64,000 nt of DNA. Source: Selaginella moellendorffii. Taxonomy: Eukaryota > Plantae > Lycopodiophyta. The first letter of the stretch is position 1. Each line of letters starts with the position of its first letter. The stretch is taken from positions 635,766-699,765 of the forward strand of contig NW_003314286.1 in the NCBI RefSeq assembly GCF_000143415.4, given 5' to 3'. The position numbers and the translations under genes were made by a program. Below, one piece after another: positions 51,612-57,253 of this stretch. The notes under the pieces are model-generated. The model was not told the DNA's origin. It made no database searches and was given only the letters and a program-made list of their open reading frames with translations.

Positions 51612-52812
51612 TCATTTCCAAAACGCGAGGCGAGAGATCTTCTGCGGCAAGCACATCAGCGGCGACGAGAAATTCGTGCTTGAGTCCATGGAGGGCGAGG
51701 AGGAGGAGGAACCCGCTGCCACCACGGACGAGGAAGACGAAGACGACGAACTCCCCTGTGAATTCCTCCTCCAAAACTTGAGGACGTGCAAGCTCTCCTC
51801 CTCGGTGTGGCGCTGCACCACGATCCGGGACGCGAACCCCTTGCTCTGCATTATCCGGCAGATCTCTCCCGGATTGTTGGCGGTGAGCGTGACCAGGTAG
51901 AAGCAGCCCCGGCTGGAGATGATCCCGTCCACCACGCCCAAGAGCCGGTCGATCACCACCCTGCCTCGATCACCCCCGGCCCAAGTCCCTGTGATCCCCG
52001 GAGCTCCAACTTCGTCCTCGGGTGTGGGGACGTATGGAGGATTGAAAACCAGCAGGTCTACGCTGCCGGCCAGCCGCCTCTCGAGGCCCGAGACGAGATC
52101 GGTGCGCACGACGTCCGCCGAGACGCCGTGCGCCTTGAGCGTCTCGAGCGTCGTCTCGGTGGCGGCCTGGTTGATATCTGTGGCAACGTATTGGGACGAC
52201 TCAACTTCGTCGCGCAGCATCAAAGCCAGGGAGGAAATCACGTACCCACTGCCACAGCCAATCTCCATGCACAGCTTGGGCTGGAGCTCCGCAAGGTGGG
52301 AGCGGTCGGCGAGGAGCGCGTCCACCAGCGCGAAGGAGTCGTCGCAGGGCTCGTAGACGTCGGCGTGGCGGGCGACGAGGCGGATGTCGGCAGATTTTCT
52401 TCGCGGCGAGAGGACCTGGAGGAACGAGCACGAATCCGGTGAGACAAAGCACGTAGAAAACTCGAGCCTGACTGAAAGAAAGAGAAGACAATGCAAGACT
52501 CTAGATGCTCGCTCGGGAAAATGCGAAGGAAAGAAATCGTTTGAGAAGGAGAAGGAATGCCAGAGATCCAAAGGGAAAGAGCTCACAAGAAAATGCGAAA
52601 AACAACCAAACTGGAGGGGAAAGAATTACGTTGTTAGCGCTGTAGGTGTGGCGGAGCTGCTCGCGTAGCGACGGCGCCACACTGTCCATGCTCAGGACGC
52701 AATCCATGCTCCGCTTGTGAAAGAGCTGCTTGCGCGAGGTCGAAACCTCAGCTGCTGCTGGCATCAATCAGAGATTCGTCAAACGCACGCGGCAGAGCCA
52801 AAATCTCACCCA
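51612..52812 (-). CDS. N6AMT1: eRF1 glutamine methyltransferase catalytic subunit (HemK2/N6AMT1/MTQ2). Start is either ATG 52812 with the 52757-52630 exon skipped, or ATG 52689/52707
   Basis: DVYEPCDDSFALVDALLAD, MEIGCGSG, NPPYVPTP, WAGGDRGRVVIDRLL. The main exon begins after the acceptor at 52416 and has no in-frame ATG before the conserved region. Confidence 0.92.
52692..52812 (-). promoter_or_regulatory. Candidate spliced uORF, MQQLRFRPRASSSFTSGAWIAS*
   Basis: ATG 52812-52810 is directly followed by GTGAGA; 52-nt intron to a CAGCAGCAG acceptor at 52758; TGA at 52694-52692, then GC, then ATG 52689 in the methyltransferase frame. Confidence 0.6.
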
Positions 52813-53058: not shown

Positions 53059-55539
53059 CTAGGGCTCCTCAAAACATTTTTTAGGGTTCTTCGCTCGCAG
53101 AAGCTCCAAATTCGCGGGCTCTTCCAGCCACATTCCTCCGGCATCGCTTCTCAGGCACTCCGCCAGCAGCAGCTCATCGCCGTAGGCCATCCCGGGCAAG
53201 AGCAAGCAAGCGACGAGCCCAGATCTCACGGCCTGGTAGACTGCAAATTTGCTGCCGCCGCTCTCGCGCTGGATCATCGCCCACAGGCACTCGACGATCG
53301 CGCCTGCGAGATCATCCTCGCCCGGATCGCCACGATCCACACCCGCGCGCGCACTGCTCCTCCTCGCGAGCAGCCGCGTGAGCTGCTGGACGCCGTCGAC
53401 GAAAACGATCCTCTGGAGCAGCCCCGGCTCCATGGCCAGGTTCTGGATCAACTTCACGAGGTTGTACCGCGCGGCCTCTCCCTGATCTTCGCGCGACAGT
53501 AGCTCCACCACCACCTTTAGATTCCGGCTGTGAGGCCCCGCGACTAGCATCCTCCCCTCTCTCGAGCAGCAGGAGATTTGGACGAGACGATTACTCGCCC
53601 AGGCCGCGTCCTCCATCGCCCCGGCGGTGATAGTTTCCATCAGCTCCTGGATCGCGGCGATAAGATTTCCTCCCTCGTCCTGGCGCTCGAGCGCCACCTT
53701 CAAATTCTCGCTAGCTTCACTGTCGCTGCGATCGATGAGGCCGAAGCTATAGCATCGCCCGAGCTCCACAATCGCGCTCGTGTAGTCCTTGGCGGCCGAT
53801 TCTCGGTAGAGACACATCGCTTGCACGGCATTGGCTTGGATCCCTCCTGCTCCTCCACGCTCGTAGATCATTCCCAGCCGCCACAGCGCCTCTGGATCGC
53901 CCAACAACGCCGCCATCCTGTACCACGTCCGGGCCTCCAAGAACTTGTGCTCGCTTCCTCTCCAGTCCGCCATGAGATCGCCCATCCCGACCTGGATCTT
54001 GATCTTCGTGGCTTCGGAAAGAGCGCTAGAGTCTTGGATCCATTCCCTAAGAGCTCCGAGTGGAATCGTCCGCTGTTCCACCGCATTGCGCAGCAGCCAA
54101 TTCTCTCCCAAGTAGTAGACCAGCGCCTCTAGCTCGTCGGCAGAGAGATCGGCAAGGAAAGATCCGCCAGTGTTCTTGGTGATCCTGCTTCGCGTCTCGA
54201 GGCCCCGGATCATCCCCAGAAAGTCGCAAATCTCCGAGAACTCGGGGCGCATTCGATCCTCTTCATGGCGGCACCTAGAGAGAAATTCGGCAATGTAGTC
54301 TGGAATTCCGCCTAGTCCATCGTCGCCACCCAAGATCTCGTAGCATACCATTGCGAAGTCGCGAACGTCGGCTTCCCTGGAGTACAAACTTCCACCGTTC
54401 TGATCGAAAACCATCCTCTTTGCCGAGCCTGTTCTTGAGGAAGTTCTTGCGATCCTCGAGAGGATCTTCGCGAGCCCGAAATCCGAGAGCTTGACGATGA
54501 AATCTCCAGTGCTGGAGAAGCTCACGAGAGCGTTCCTCGTCTTGAGGTTCGTGTGAATGATCCTGAGATCGTGCAAGCACCTCATCCCCCGGGCGATCTG
54601 GAGCATAATATCCAGCGATTGATCCAGGGAGAAGGGCCCCGGCTGTGAATCCTCACCTCGAGCTCGACCCCTCGCCTTCCCCGCGATCACGGCCGAGAGA
54701 TTTGTGCTCATCAGCTCCATCACCAGCGAGCAGCCCTGGTCTCCCCGCGGCGCGATCCCCAGGACGCGCACCAGATTGGGATGGATTGCGTGGAAGAGCG
54801 GCGCAGCATTGCTTCCCAGATCGACCGGCAGCACCTTCTCCGCGAAGCTCTGCCGCAGCCATCGTGTTTGATAAACCCTAATGCCCTGACTATGGCCGAT
54901 GGTTTTCCCGCGCTGGAGCTCCGCGGAATTGATCCTGTATGCTCCGGCCATCTCGCGCGGATCGAGCCGAGGGATGAGCGTTAGCGCCATCTGATGGAGC
55001 TGCTTGTTCTTCTCTCGATCTATCGTCTTGCACAAGACCTTGGATTTCTGGAGGATTTCTAGCCGATCGCGCCGCGACAGCTCCTCCAGCGATGATGCTC
55101 GCAGGCTGCCCAGAGTCTCCTCCATGTAACCAAGAAGGACCCCCTCGTCGGGTAGGATGCGAGTGAGCGCCAGGGATTTGCACAGATCTTCCACCGCGAC
55201 TTCGAATTCCTGCTGGTTTTCTTCCTTGAGCAGGGCCTTCTCCAGCCACTGCGCCCTGGATCTGCCGCAGGAGGAGACGAGGTCGAGGCACTTGATCACG
55301 GCTGCCTTGACGATGCTTTGGAATCCTCCATAGCTCTGTTCTTCCACGAACCCTTCCACGAAACGAGCGAGGAATTTGCACTGCCATATCGCGATCTCCG
55401 AATTCTCGGCCGCAGACGCTATCCGCTCTACCAGATCCGCCAGCGGCCGCTGCTGATCGATTGAAAAATCTTGCGAATCCGCGGCATCGAAGCAGCTGCT
55501 ACTGCTAGAAGAGATATCTCTCCTGGAATCCAAAGACAT
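53059..55539 (-). CDS. Intronless MLKL-like protein: HeLo/DUF1221-like N-terminus + pseudokinase + SEL1-like repeats + ARM-like helical C-terminus
   Basis: N-terminus IWQCKFLA...CLDLVSSC...WLEKAL...NQQEF; kinase fold PFSLDQSLDIMLQIARGMRCLH..IIHTNLKTRNALV..VKLSDFGLAK..ADVRDFAMVCYEIL; SEL1-like EARTWYRMAALLGDPEALWRLGMIYERG and QAMCLYRESAAKDYTSAIVELGRCYSFG. Confidence 0.85.
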   Translation of the reverse strand: MSLDSRRDISSSSSSCFDAADSQDFSIDQQRPLADLVERIASAAENSEIAIWQCKFLARFVEGFVEEQSYGGFQSIVKAAVIKCLDLVSSCGRSRAQWLEKALLKEENQQEFEVAVEDLCKSLALTRILPDEGVLLGYMEETLGSLRASSLEELSRRDRLEILQKSKVLCKTIDREKNKQLHQMALTLIPRLDPREMAGAYRINSAELQRGKTIGHSQGIRVYQTRWLRQSFAEKVLPVDLGSNAAPLFHAIHPNLVRVLGIAPRGDQGCSLVMELMSTNLSAVIAGKARGRARGEDSQPGPFSLDQSLDIMLQIARGMRCLHDLRIIHTNLKTRNALVSFSSTGDFIVKLSDFGLAKILSRIARTSSRTGSAKRMVFDQNGGSLYSREADVRDFAMVCYEILGGDDGLGGIPDYIAEFLSRCRHEEDRMRPEFSEICDFLGMIRGLETRSRITKNTGGSFLADLSADELEALVYYLGENWLLRNAVEQRTIPLGALREWIQDSSALSEATKIKIQVGMGDLMADWRGSEHKFLEARTWYRMAALLGDPEALWRLGMIYERGGAGGIQANAVQAMCLYRESAAKDYTSAIVELGRCYSFGLIDRSDSEASENLKVALERQDEGGNLIAAIQELMETITAGAMEDAAWASNRLVQISCCSREGRMLVAGPHSRNLKVVVELLSREDQGEAARYNLVKLIQNLAMEPGLLQRIVFVDGVQQLTRLLARRSSARAGVDRGDPGEDDLAGAIVECLWAMIQRESGGSKFAVYQAVRSGLVACLLLPGMAYGDELLLAECLRSDAGGMWLEEPANLELLRAKNPKKCFEEP

Positions 55540-55639: not shown

Positions 55640-57253
55640 ATGCCGGCGGTCTTGGAGCTTTCCCTGGACGCATCCGAGAGAGAGCTCGCCGATCGCCTCA
55701 GAAGCGCCAAGAACACCGCGCAATGTCAGCTCCTCCATGCCCAGATCCTCGCGAGCCGGCGCCACCGTGACAGCCTCTTCCTCGCGAATGCGCTCATCCA
55801 GATCTACGGCAGATGCAACGAGGCCGGAAAATCAAAGCGCGTCTTCGATGGAATGGAACGCCATTGCTTCCTCACCTGGAAGCTCCTCCTCCAGGCATAT
55901 GCCCTAAAGGGGCATCTGGACGATGCCAAGCGAACATTCGAAGCCATGCCCGAGAGAGATGCCGTGTGCCACAACATCATGATCACGGCCTATGGAAGAG
56001 CCGGCCAGCTGGAGCACGCCAAGCGTATGTTTGACACGTCGGTGGAGTGGAGCATCGTGACGTGGAATGCCCTGCTGGCAGCATATACCGAGAACCGGCA
56101 TTTTGACCAGGCGGTGGAAATATACCGGATTATGCCCGCCGTGAGCATCGTCTCCGCGAACACGATGATGCATGGCTATGCCCTAGAGGGCCGGATCGAG
56201 GACGCTGCCGCGATCTTTGATCGAATGCCGGAGATCAGCATGGTTTCGTGGACGGAGCTCCTCGCACTCCATGCCCAGAGGGGGAATTTGCCGCGGGCGA
56301 GGAAGATCTTTGCACAGGTGCCCGAGTTGAATGTAGTGATGGCCACTGCGATGATCCAGGCGTGCGCGCAAAGCGGGGAATTGCGGCGAGCAGTGGCGAT
56401 CTTTGAGAGGATGGGCGAGAGGAATCTTGTGGCGTGGACGGCGATGGTGTGCGCATTCGTCCAGGGCGGGGATTTGGCGTCGGCGAAAGCGCTGTTCGAT
56501 TCAATGCCGGAGCACGACACCGCCTCGTGCAATGCAATGCTCCAGGCGCTAGTTTCCTTGGGATTTCTCGAGGAATGCAAGGGAATGTTTGATTCCATGG
56601 TCGATCGAAACGAAATCTCGTGGGCAGTGATGCTCGAGGCGTATGCCCAGACAGGGGATCTCCAGCAGGCGAAGCAGCTCTTCGATTCCATGCCCGATCA
56701 AACGCTAGTGGCACGGACCGCGATAATGGGTCTCTTTGCAGAGAAGGGACACTTGCGTCTGGCGAAGAAGATCTTTGACACGATGTTCTTGCGGGACACG
56801 ATCGCTTGGAATGCTATGGTAGCTGCAAATGCCCGGAGCGGGCATGCTACCGCATCGCTGGATCTCTTCCACCGCATGGCCGTAGAGGGCTATAACCGCG
56901 AGGAGCTCGCGTTCGTCAGCGTTCTTGCGTCGTGCGCGCAAATGGGCGCGCTGGAGCGCGCGCGGGGCTACTTTGTGTCGATGGAATTCGACCACGGGCA
57001 AGCGCCTGAGCTGGAGCACTACTCGTGCATTGTGGATGTGCTCGCGAGGCTGGGCTACCTCCGCCAGGCGCGAGAGCTCCTCTCCACCATGCCCTTCGTG
57101 CCCAACGATTCGAGTTACAAGGCGGTGCTCAGCGCTTGCCGGATCCAACATAACGTCCGCCACGCGTCTGGGATCCTGCGCGAGTGCCACACCAACCACT
57201 GGGACACGGCGGCGCCGCTAGTCCTCTTCTCCAACGCCGCCAGGAGCCACTAA
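55640..57253 (+). CDS. PLS-class PPR protein with E domain and no DYW
   Basis: FLANALIQIYGRC, ~31-aa motifs (RNLVAWTAMVCAFVQGGDLASAKALFDSMPE), PELEHYSCIVDVLARLG...MPFVPN...VLSACRI. Confidence 0.94.
   Translation: MPAVLELSLDASERELADRLRSAKNTAQCQLLHAQILASRRHRDSLFLANALIQIYGRCNEAGKSKRVFDGMERHCFLTWKLLLQAYALKGHLDDAKRTFEAMPERDAVCHNIMITAYGRAGQLEHAKRMFDTSVEWSIVTWNALLAAYTENRHFDQAVEIYRIMPAVSIVSANTMMHGYALEGRIEDAAAIFDRMPEISMVSWTELLALHAQRGNLPRARKIFAQVPELNVVMATAMIQACAQSGELRRAVAIFERMGERNLVAWTAMVCAFVQGGDLASAKALFDSMPEHDTASCNAMLQALVSLGFLEECKGMFDSMVDRNEISWAVMLEAYAQTGDLQQAKQLFDSMPDQTLVARTAIMGLFAEKGHLRLAKKIFDTMFLRDTIAWNAMVAANARSGHATASLDLFHRMAVEGYNREELAFVSVLASCAQMGALERARGYFVSMEFDHGQAPELEHYSCIVDVLARLGYLRQARELLSTMPFVPNDSSYKAVLSACRIQHNVRHASGILRECHTNHWDTAAPLVLFSNAARSH

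Follow-up and report, generated by a model that had tools for sequence, protein, structure and literature searches.

What does a gene-sized open reading frame (ORF) encode where the assembly record of a lycophyte reference genome has no called gene, and is it a gene at all? The question is raised by a stretch of 64,000 nucleotides from Selaginella moellendorffii (contig NW_003314286.1 of assembly GCF_000143415.4, positions 635,766 to 699,765 of the forward strand; hereafter the window), which carries an apparently intact 2.5-kb gene on its minus strand. The predicted product joins an N-terminal domain of the kind found in the plant MLKL proteins to a dead kinase, to SEL1 repeats and to an armadillo-like solenoid. 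The explanation favoured here, to which slightly less than an even chance is given, is that of a real gene, a divergent member of a small and old land-plant family, whose dead kinase would form part of an MLKL-like switch.

The ORF starts with ATG, contains neither an intron nor an internal stop codon and comprises 826 amino acids (aa) and a stop codon. At the local base composition, a stop-free run of this length has a chance probability of about 2e-14, and the RNA contigs placed on the ORF contain no splice joint inside it. A preliminary description, made from the letters of the DNA, had named an intronless 826-aa ORF and had read its product as a DUF1221/HeLo-type N-terminus followed by a pseudokinase, by SEL1 repeats and by an ARM-like tail; the frame was recovered at the same coordinates, and the order of domains is borne out by the predictions (Table 1). 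In the collections searched there is no gene model for the locus. A gene with exactly this product is not on record, a near-identical protein is absent among about 15 billion, and matches of more than 40% identity were found neither in word-index searches nor in an exhaustive search of 1.84 billion cluster representatives. No paralog of the ORF was detected within the window (tblastn).

Table 1 Features of the ORF, of its predicted product and of the neighbouring genes; positions are those of the window
Feature	Residues	Position	Strand	Remarks
ORF	1-826	53059..55539	minus	intact, intronless
N-terminal extension	1-25	55465..55539	minus	Ser-rich, probably disordered
Candidate DUF1221-type HeLo/four-helix bundle	~26-135	55135..55464	minus	four predicted helices; conserved Trp in AQWLEKAL (residues 96-103)
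Brace-like region	~136-203	54931..55134	minus	long predicted helices; Asp of RRDRLEIL invariant in the family
Pseudokinase (predicted)	~204-447	54199..54930	minus	tyrosine kinase-like (TKL) type
Gly loop IGHSQGIRV		54874-54900	minus	degenerate; LGxGxxGxV in the family (alignment with relatives)
VAIK Lys within FAEK		54829-54846	minus	kept
HTN replacing HRD	329-331	54547-54555	minus	catalytic Asp lost
DFG	353-355	54475-54483	minus	kept
Linker	~448-510	54010..54198	minus	helical, conserved in the family; LGxxW motif as YLGENWLL (54091-54114)
SEL1 (Sel1-like, SLR) repeats	~511-610	53710..54009	minus	two to three predicted repeats
Tail	~611-826	53062..53709	minus	predicted armadillo/HEAT-like alpha-solenoid, conserved in the family
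Methyltransferase gene, intron		52413-52628	minus	214 nt
Methyltransferase gene, 5' region		52754/52757-52810	minus	two alternative joints 3 nt apart, skipping 55 or 52 nt (stranded RNA reads)
Spacer between start codons		55540-55639		100 bp
Pentatricopeptide repeat (PPR) gene		55640-57253	plus	537 aa, intronless, head-to-head with the ORF

Pfam PK_Tyr_Ser-Thr matches the kinase domain with an E-value of 4.5e-20, covering profile positions 52-199 of 258 only. In the alignment with relatives the position of the alphaC Glu is occupied by Asn, the GTxxWxAPE segment including the APE motif is missing, and about 25 residues around helix alphaG are deleted between FAMVCYEILGG and PDYIAEFLSRC; the Asn of the catalytic loop is kept. 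By several independent criteria the domain is thus a predicted pseudokinase: since the catalytic Asp, the alphaC Glu, a proper Gly loop, APE and alphaG are all absent, phosphate transfer should no longer be possible. Among solved chains with a single kinase, AtMLKL3 (6lba; 63.4 bits) and AtMLKL2 (6ka4; 59.4 bits) score highest over the full sequence, followed by other kinases at about 47 bits; a tandem EGFR construct reaches a sum of 68.4 bits from two copies of 33 bits.

A tree of 85 kinase domains places the ORF kinase inside a clade of 56 rows that holds the plant HeLo-kinases, with a support of 96 in the Shimodaira-Hasegawa-like approximate likelihood ratio test (SH-aLRT), and therein inside a subclade of 22 rows (support 92) that includes the proteins with SEL1 repeats described below (the SEL family) as well as DUF1221 kinases of mosses and the angiosperm MLKL ortholog P0002. 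The tree leaves the order within this subclade open, and the branch of the ORF is long; the row closest to it is a kinase from Sphagnum in which HGN replaces HRD. The plant HeLo-kinase clade contains neither receptor-like kinases nor oomycete TKLs, and the kinase-SEL1 proteins of Dissophora, Tritrichomonas and others are not part of it either. The preliminary description had listed a degenerate Gly loop, no obvious alphaC Glu, the HTN triplet, an intact DFG and the lack of APE, all of which are seen in the alignment. It had further regarded DIMLQIARGM and FAMVC as typical of plant DUF1221/HeLo kinases, the Arabidopsis MLKLs among them, and both motifs are indeed present in the AtMLKL3 (6lba) alignment. 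Its proposal of a kinship with plant MLKL/DUF1221 kinases agrees with the tree, in which the domain groups not with ordinary kinases, the outcome that would have spoken against the proposal, but with HeLo-kinases and the MLKL ortholog.

The same tree bears on the origin of the kinase-SEL1 combination. Large clusters of kinase-plus-Sel1 proteins in the ESM Atlas come mostly from Mucoromycota and Parabasalia, and many of their members are among the matches of the ORF, as would be expected if a kinase-SEL1 gene had been acquired horizontally from Glomeromycotina or Mucoromycota and then fused to a plant N-terminus. However, the non-plant kinase-SEL1 kinases stand outside the plant clade, the post-kinase linker and the tail occur in plant proteins only, and the C-terminal tree (see below) follows plant phylogeny. 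A fungal origin of the kinase-SEL1 part was rejected on the kinase tree, and horizontal acquisition as a whole is highly improbable. The proteins of Mucoromycota/Glomeromycotina and Parabasalia resemble the ORF product in having a TKL-like kinase followed by SEL1 repeats, but a HeLo-like N-terminus, the plant linker and an ARM-like tail are all missing from them, and their SEL1 repeats are usually far more numerous. In the tree the kinases are not closely related. The fusion in fungi and Parabasalia on the one hand and in plants on the other is convergent.

Related kinases of other layouts were met as well. Many proteins from mosses, ferns and other plants (P0012, P0014, P0070, P0071 and P0004) carry two to four kinases in tandem together with a DUF1221-like N-terminus; a 1479-aa protein of Ceratodon purpureus is one example of HeLo plus tandem kinases, a layout that recalls the tandem-kinase immune receptors of cereals. 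P0181 of Sphagnum jensenii (1463 aa) joins dynamin/GTPase-type domains (precomputed Pfam PF00350, PF01926, PF05879) to a kinase from this subclade of 22 rows. P0142, a 555-aa transcript product of the charophyte alga Klebsormidium subtile, has its kinase inside the plant HeLo-kinase clade, and the N-terminal hidden Markov model (HMM) did not match it; this placement may mean that the kinase lineage is older than the land plants.

The ORF protein belongs to a family with the same layout. A profile of the post-kinase region that was built without the ORF protein matches residues 460-707 of the latter with an E-value of 9e-50, and the family alignment shows a helical N-terminal domain, a kinase, the LGxxW linker, SEL1 repeats and a conserved tail in succession. 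The linker contains invariant columns, L477 and G478 among them, and is modelled by AlphaFold2 (AF2) with a per-residue confidence (pLDDT) of 84-94 over residues 460-519 and of 66 at about 450-459. The first 25 residues of the ORF product have no counterpart in the alignment, and pLDDT is below 50 over the first 9 residues of the N-terminal model, which begins at residue 20. The architecture recurs in P0013, P0031, P0045, P0049, P0058, P0082 and P0324. Members on record are KAJ7516219.1 of Diphasiastrum complanatum (1019 aa), a second gene of this species known as a fragment (362-478 aa), Gb_39729 of Ginkgo biloba (832 aa), the annotated paralog of S. moellendorffii (XP_024526212.1, two alleles, 923 aa) and CAM6015050.1 of Sphagnum balticum (764 aa); furthermore P0045 (842 aa) is intronless and has a gene for an auxin-binding protein next to it on a contig of 844 kb, and P0049, P0058 and P0324 measure 920-1110 aa. 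The full domain order from N-terminus to tail is predicted for the proteins of Selaginella, Diphasiastrum and Ginkgo. The model of the Sphagnum protein CAM6015050.1 is truncated at its N-terminus, so that only the last part of the bundle is seen in it, together with the kinase and a Sel1 repeat. The named members share 23-30% identity with the ORF protein, and all of them are annotated as 'hypothetical' and uncharacterised.

Family members were recognised by naming, Pfam scans and local HMMs after the exhaustive search. The word-index searches with the full protein, the family alignment and the Diphasiastrum C-terminus were swamped by kinases and generic SEL1 proteins and missed known members, which makes them uninformative on distribution; no angiosperm member turned up, in searches that are unable to show absence. 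The tree of the C-terminal part falls into a moss group (Sphagnum and P0045), a group of P0049 and P0058 and a group of vascular plants with the ORF, its paralog, Ginkgo, P0324 and both Diphasiastrum genes (support 97/96). Such a pattern is consistent with vertical inheritance since an early land plant. HRD, DFG and APE are kept in most relatives, whereas the paralog P0082, the only other member with a dead kinase, has HRC and has lost the catalytic Asp too. Because most relatives retain these motifs, the dead kinase is to be read as a derived state of the ORF and its Selaginella paralog. The preliminary description had not recognised the architecture from plants. This holds insofar as the literature search found no published description of a plant family of MLKL/HeLo-kinase-SEL1 proteins, and the layout from mosses to Ginkgo seems to be undescribed; it does not hold for the plants themselves, for Sphagnum, Diphasiastrum and Ginkgo are predicted to have the layout, as is the S. 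moellendorffii paralog.

SEL1 repeats in the ORF product are indicated by several lines of comparison. Pfam Sel1 (PF08238) matches residues 549-585 with 23.1 bits (E 1e-4), short of the curated cut-off of 30.7, which the relatives P0082 (51.7 bits) and P0031 (42.1 bits) exceed. The solved SEL1 proteins 4bwr, 6ok3 and 8sxq match by sequence with E-values from 4e-15 to 1e-10 (phmmer), and Sel1 clusters of the ESM Atlas match the C-terminus too. The AF2 model of residues 440-826 is all-helical (pLDDT 82, predicted template-modelling score (pTM) 0.77), and its residues ~478-668 superpose on HcpC with Z 13.1 and a root mean square deviation of 1.5 A over 105 residues at 23% identity; this part can also be superposed on SEL1L, on LceB and on Sel1 proteins of Oxalobacter. 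Residues ~511-610 are accordingly predicted to form SLR repeats; two such repeats had been suspected earlier at ~53940-53740, a stretch that lies within the one now delimited.

In the model of the remaining tail, pLDDT is mostly 82-93 as far as residue ~720; beyond this point the values are lower. Residues ~570-826 (131-387 of the model) superpose on the ARM-like part of HUWE1 with Z 13.6 over 230 residues, on beta-catenin with Z 12.6 and on CTNNBL1 with Z 11.7-11.9; importin-alpha is also among the structural matches, which overall have Z 11-13.6. The short-long-long pattern of helices in the model fits armadillo repeats. However, such Z-scores can be reached by unrelated helical repeats, Pfam Arm does not match the ORF protein, and the HMM of the tail matches family members only. 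The armadillo kinship is thus a matter of shape, and 'ARM/HEAT-like solenoid' is the safe wording for the predicted fold. Proteins that combine TPR with ARM repeats (TTC12, UNC-45) were considered as relatives of the C-terminus and set aside, with ESM Atlas feature scores of 0.76-0.78, which is below the meaningful level.

For the N-terminus, AF2 predicts helices at residues 33-43, 48-65, 71-90 and 95-128, the candidate bundle, and at 133-172, 179-192 and 194-209 in the brace region, where pLDDT is 86-95 over residues 150-199; the brace column D139 is invariant in the family N-terminal alignment. Compared by hhalign, the N-termini of the SEL family and those of a DUF1221/MLKL set match with a probability of 99% and an E-value of 8e-18 over 145 columns. 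This set includes P0002, which itself matches 6lba with an E-value of 1e-218 and Pfam DUF1221 with 3e-92. A profile of SEL-family N-termini only finds AtMLKL3 (6lba) as its best match in the PDB (E 6e-4), with an alignment that spans HeLo and brace, and the E-value falls to 8e-10 after addition of DUF1221-type sequences from bryophytes and ferns. At the level of the family, homology to the N-terminal domain of plant MLKLs is therefore well supported by profile comparison. For the ORF protein itself, a profile built without it matches residues 87-195 (p 5e-7), a stretch that takes in the Trp conserved in the family and the invariant brace Asp, and supports homology for the second half of its domain too. 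A Pfam SapB_1 match at residues 97-123 (12-16 bits against a cut-off of 25) was discarded as chance, because these residues align with the DUF1221 helix that carries the conserved Trp.

Whether the gene is alive was judged from RNA and from allelic variation. In two assemblies, RNA contigs span almost the whole ORF without a joint at a word depth of 2-13, compared with 90-350 for the neighbours. The intron of the neighbouring methyltransferase gene has depth 0 in the RNA assemblies, which argues against contamination with DNA, and one run was confirmed as RNA by a spliced contig. A contig of run X1 (record 7) runs from 55257 inside the ORF into the PPR gene, whose transcripts may start inside the ORF and antisense to it. 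Since this contig bridges the 5' end of the ORF and the divergent PPR gene, part of the RNA signal of the ORF is perhaps antisense read-through. The allelic differences in the RNA assemblies comprise 8 synonymous and 9 non-synonymous sites and no stop; the ratio of non-synonymous to synonymous polymorphism (pN/pS) is about 0.35, and 9 or fewer non-synonymous sites out of 17 have a p of 0.03 under neutrality (binomial). Run X1, which has a different organism code, carries a 9-nt in-frame tandem duplication at 54169 that adds 3 residues to the linker and is otherwise nearly identical to the window. RNA support is weak on the whole, and the gene is judged to be probably functional, with low expression in the conditions sampled.

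The alternative would be a decaying relic, that is, a recently inactivated paralog whose frame is open by luck and whose two-stranded RNA is noise. In agreement with this idea, five motif losses and a deletion mark a strongly degraded kinase, no other N-terminus of the family has diverged as far (15-22% identity), and the end branches of the ORF are long in the C-terminal tree as well as in the kinase tree; the few two-stranded reads and the lack of a called gene, both given below, point the same way. Against it stand the very low chance of such a long open frame, 17 allelic sites with a single in-frame indel beside them and no stop, the pN/pS value, the retention of SEL1 and linker residues that are invariant in the family, and a confidently modelled C-terminus. 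Moreover, pseudokinases such as MLKL are functional despite a similar loss of motifs. Decay is regarded as unlikely.

Several observations nevertheless weigh against the favoured reading of a real and divergent family member with an MLKL-like switch. The record GCA_000143415.2:GL377590.1 has no gene call in the interval from the methyltransferase gene to the PPR gene. Within the 12% that was read of two stranded raw-read libraries, few reads fall on the ORF and these lie on both strands, and the polymorphism test is based on 17 single-nucleotide polymorphisms only. Further points concern the N-terminus. Neither Pfam DUF1221 nor MLKL_N matches the ORF protein alone, and no similarity to the family profile could be detected for residues 26-86, which include the first two predicted helices. 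The N-terminal AF2 model is of middling quality (pLDDT 70, pTM 0.41), and Foldseek against the PDB found no match to it at E <= 0.001. In a wide fold search with VIA-align the highest values, up to Z 6.8, belong to generic helical bundles, and mouse MLKL and the CC-R domain of NRG1.1 reached Z 5.3-5.4; the four-helix bundle (4HB) of human MLKL ranked first among the Foldseek candidates re-examined, with Z 6.2 and 122 of 140 residues aligned, yet all of these matches (Z 5-7) lie inside the noise range for helical bundles. The structural comparison of the N-terminus with MLKL is therefore consistent, not decisive.

How would such a protein work? By analogy with MLKL, a switch is most probable: the dead kinase and the C-terminal solenoid would hold the N-terminal bundle inactive and offer binding surfaces. 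As a trigger, a partner might bind the SEL1/ARM module, or an active relative might phosphorylate the protein; either event would free the bundle, which could then oligomerise and act at a membrane. The preliminary description had proposed an executioner with a repeat-based sensor of its own. An activity at the membrane or in cell death, an immune role and a sensor role of the repeats are all drawn from the analogy with MLKL and may apply to the ORF protein.

Another possibility is a signalling scaffold or decoy without lethal activity: an adaptor, an allosteric partner or a bait that mimics active family members or other kinase-SEL1 proteins, with a bundle that only oligomerises or localises the protein. 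The catalytic motifs of most relatives are intact, so that the ancestral role probably involved phosphorylation, and the catalytic Asp is lost in both Selaginella copies (HTN in the ORF, HRC in P0082). In addition, many HeLo-kinases of bryophytes and lycophytes are tandem kinases, an architecture found in plant kinase-fusion immune receptors (10.64898/2026.08.07.743466). The N-terminal domain, however, is by hhalign homologous to the domain that causes cell death in AtMLKLs (10.1101/681015), and a non-lethal role of this kind appears somewhat unlikely.

Among described systems, the favoured switch is closest to the plant MLKLs, which are built of HeLo domain, brace, pseudokinase and a serine-rich unstructured tail, are known across seed plants and cause cell death by their HeLo domain (10.1101/681015). 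AtMLKL1-3 (6KA4, 6LBA) share with the ORF protein, at the family level, the DUF1221/HeLo-type bundle and brace, and moreover a dead kinase, the kinase subclade and the motifs DIMLQIARGM and FAMVC. Where the AtMLKLs end in a serine-rich unstructured C-terminus (10.1101/681015), however, folded SEL1 repeats and an armadillo-like solenoid are predicted in the ORF protein, and AtMLKL3 has HGD and GFG, whereas the ORF protein has HTN and keeps DFG. In contrast to the plant MLKLs as described, the ORF family also reaches mosses and lycophytes. Because the serine-rich tail is lacking, the protein is filed as a variant of the HeLo-kinase/MLKL kind and not as an MLKL. The MLKL-type proteins Pm13 and R3AK of wheat/Aegilops, which execute cell death via their 4HB (PMC10951266; 10.64898/2026.08.07.743466), likewise have a 4HB/MLKL-like N-terminus fused to a kinase. 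However, their bundle is of the MLKL_NTD/Cbl-N type (MLKL_N PF22215 / cd21037), their kinases are active and C-terminal repeats are missing, whereas the ORF product lacks an MLKL_N match and its kinase is dead.

With regard to the locus, a PPR gene lies directly upstream not only of the ORF (Table 1) but also of the annotated paralog P0082 (L004 898-2583).

A family that extends from mosses to Ginkgo and carries folded repeats in the place of the MLKL tail would move the HeLo-kinase toolkit for cell death to the early land plants. In its boldest form, which is doubtful, the proposal is that early land plants possessed a single-chain device for immunity or cell death without an NB-ARC domain, in which a helical executioner of MLKL type was joined to a switch, either kinase or pseudokinase, and to a sensor of SEL1/armadillo repeats, and that this device was overlooked and survives in mosses, lycophytes and Ginkgo, the ORF being a pseudokinase version with its own receptor module. 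If this were true and the family absent from flowering plants, it would have been lost there or reduced to the MLKLs without repeats. The natural pairs of active and dead kinases within the family offer material for studies of the switch, and the family of the ORF would be a candidate for a logic that unites receptor and executioner without a nucleotide-binding leucine-rich repeat receptor (NLR).

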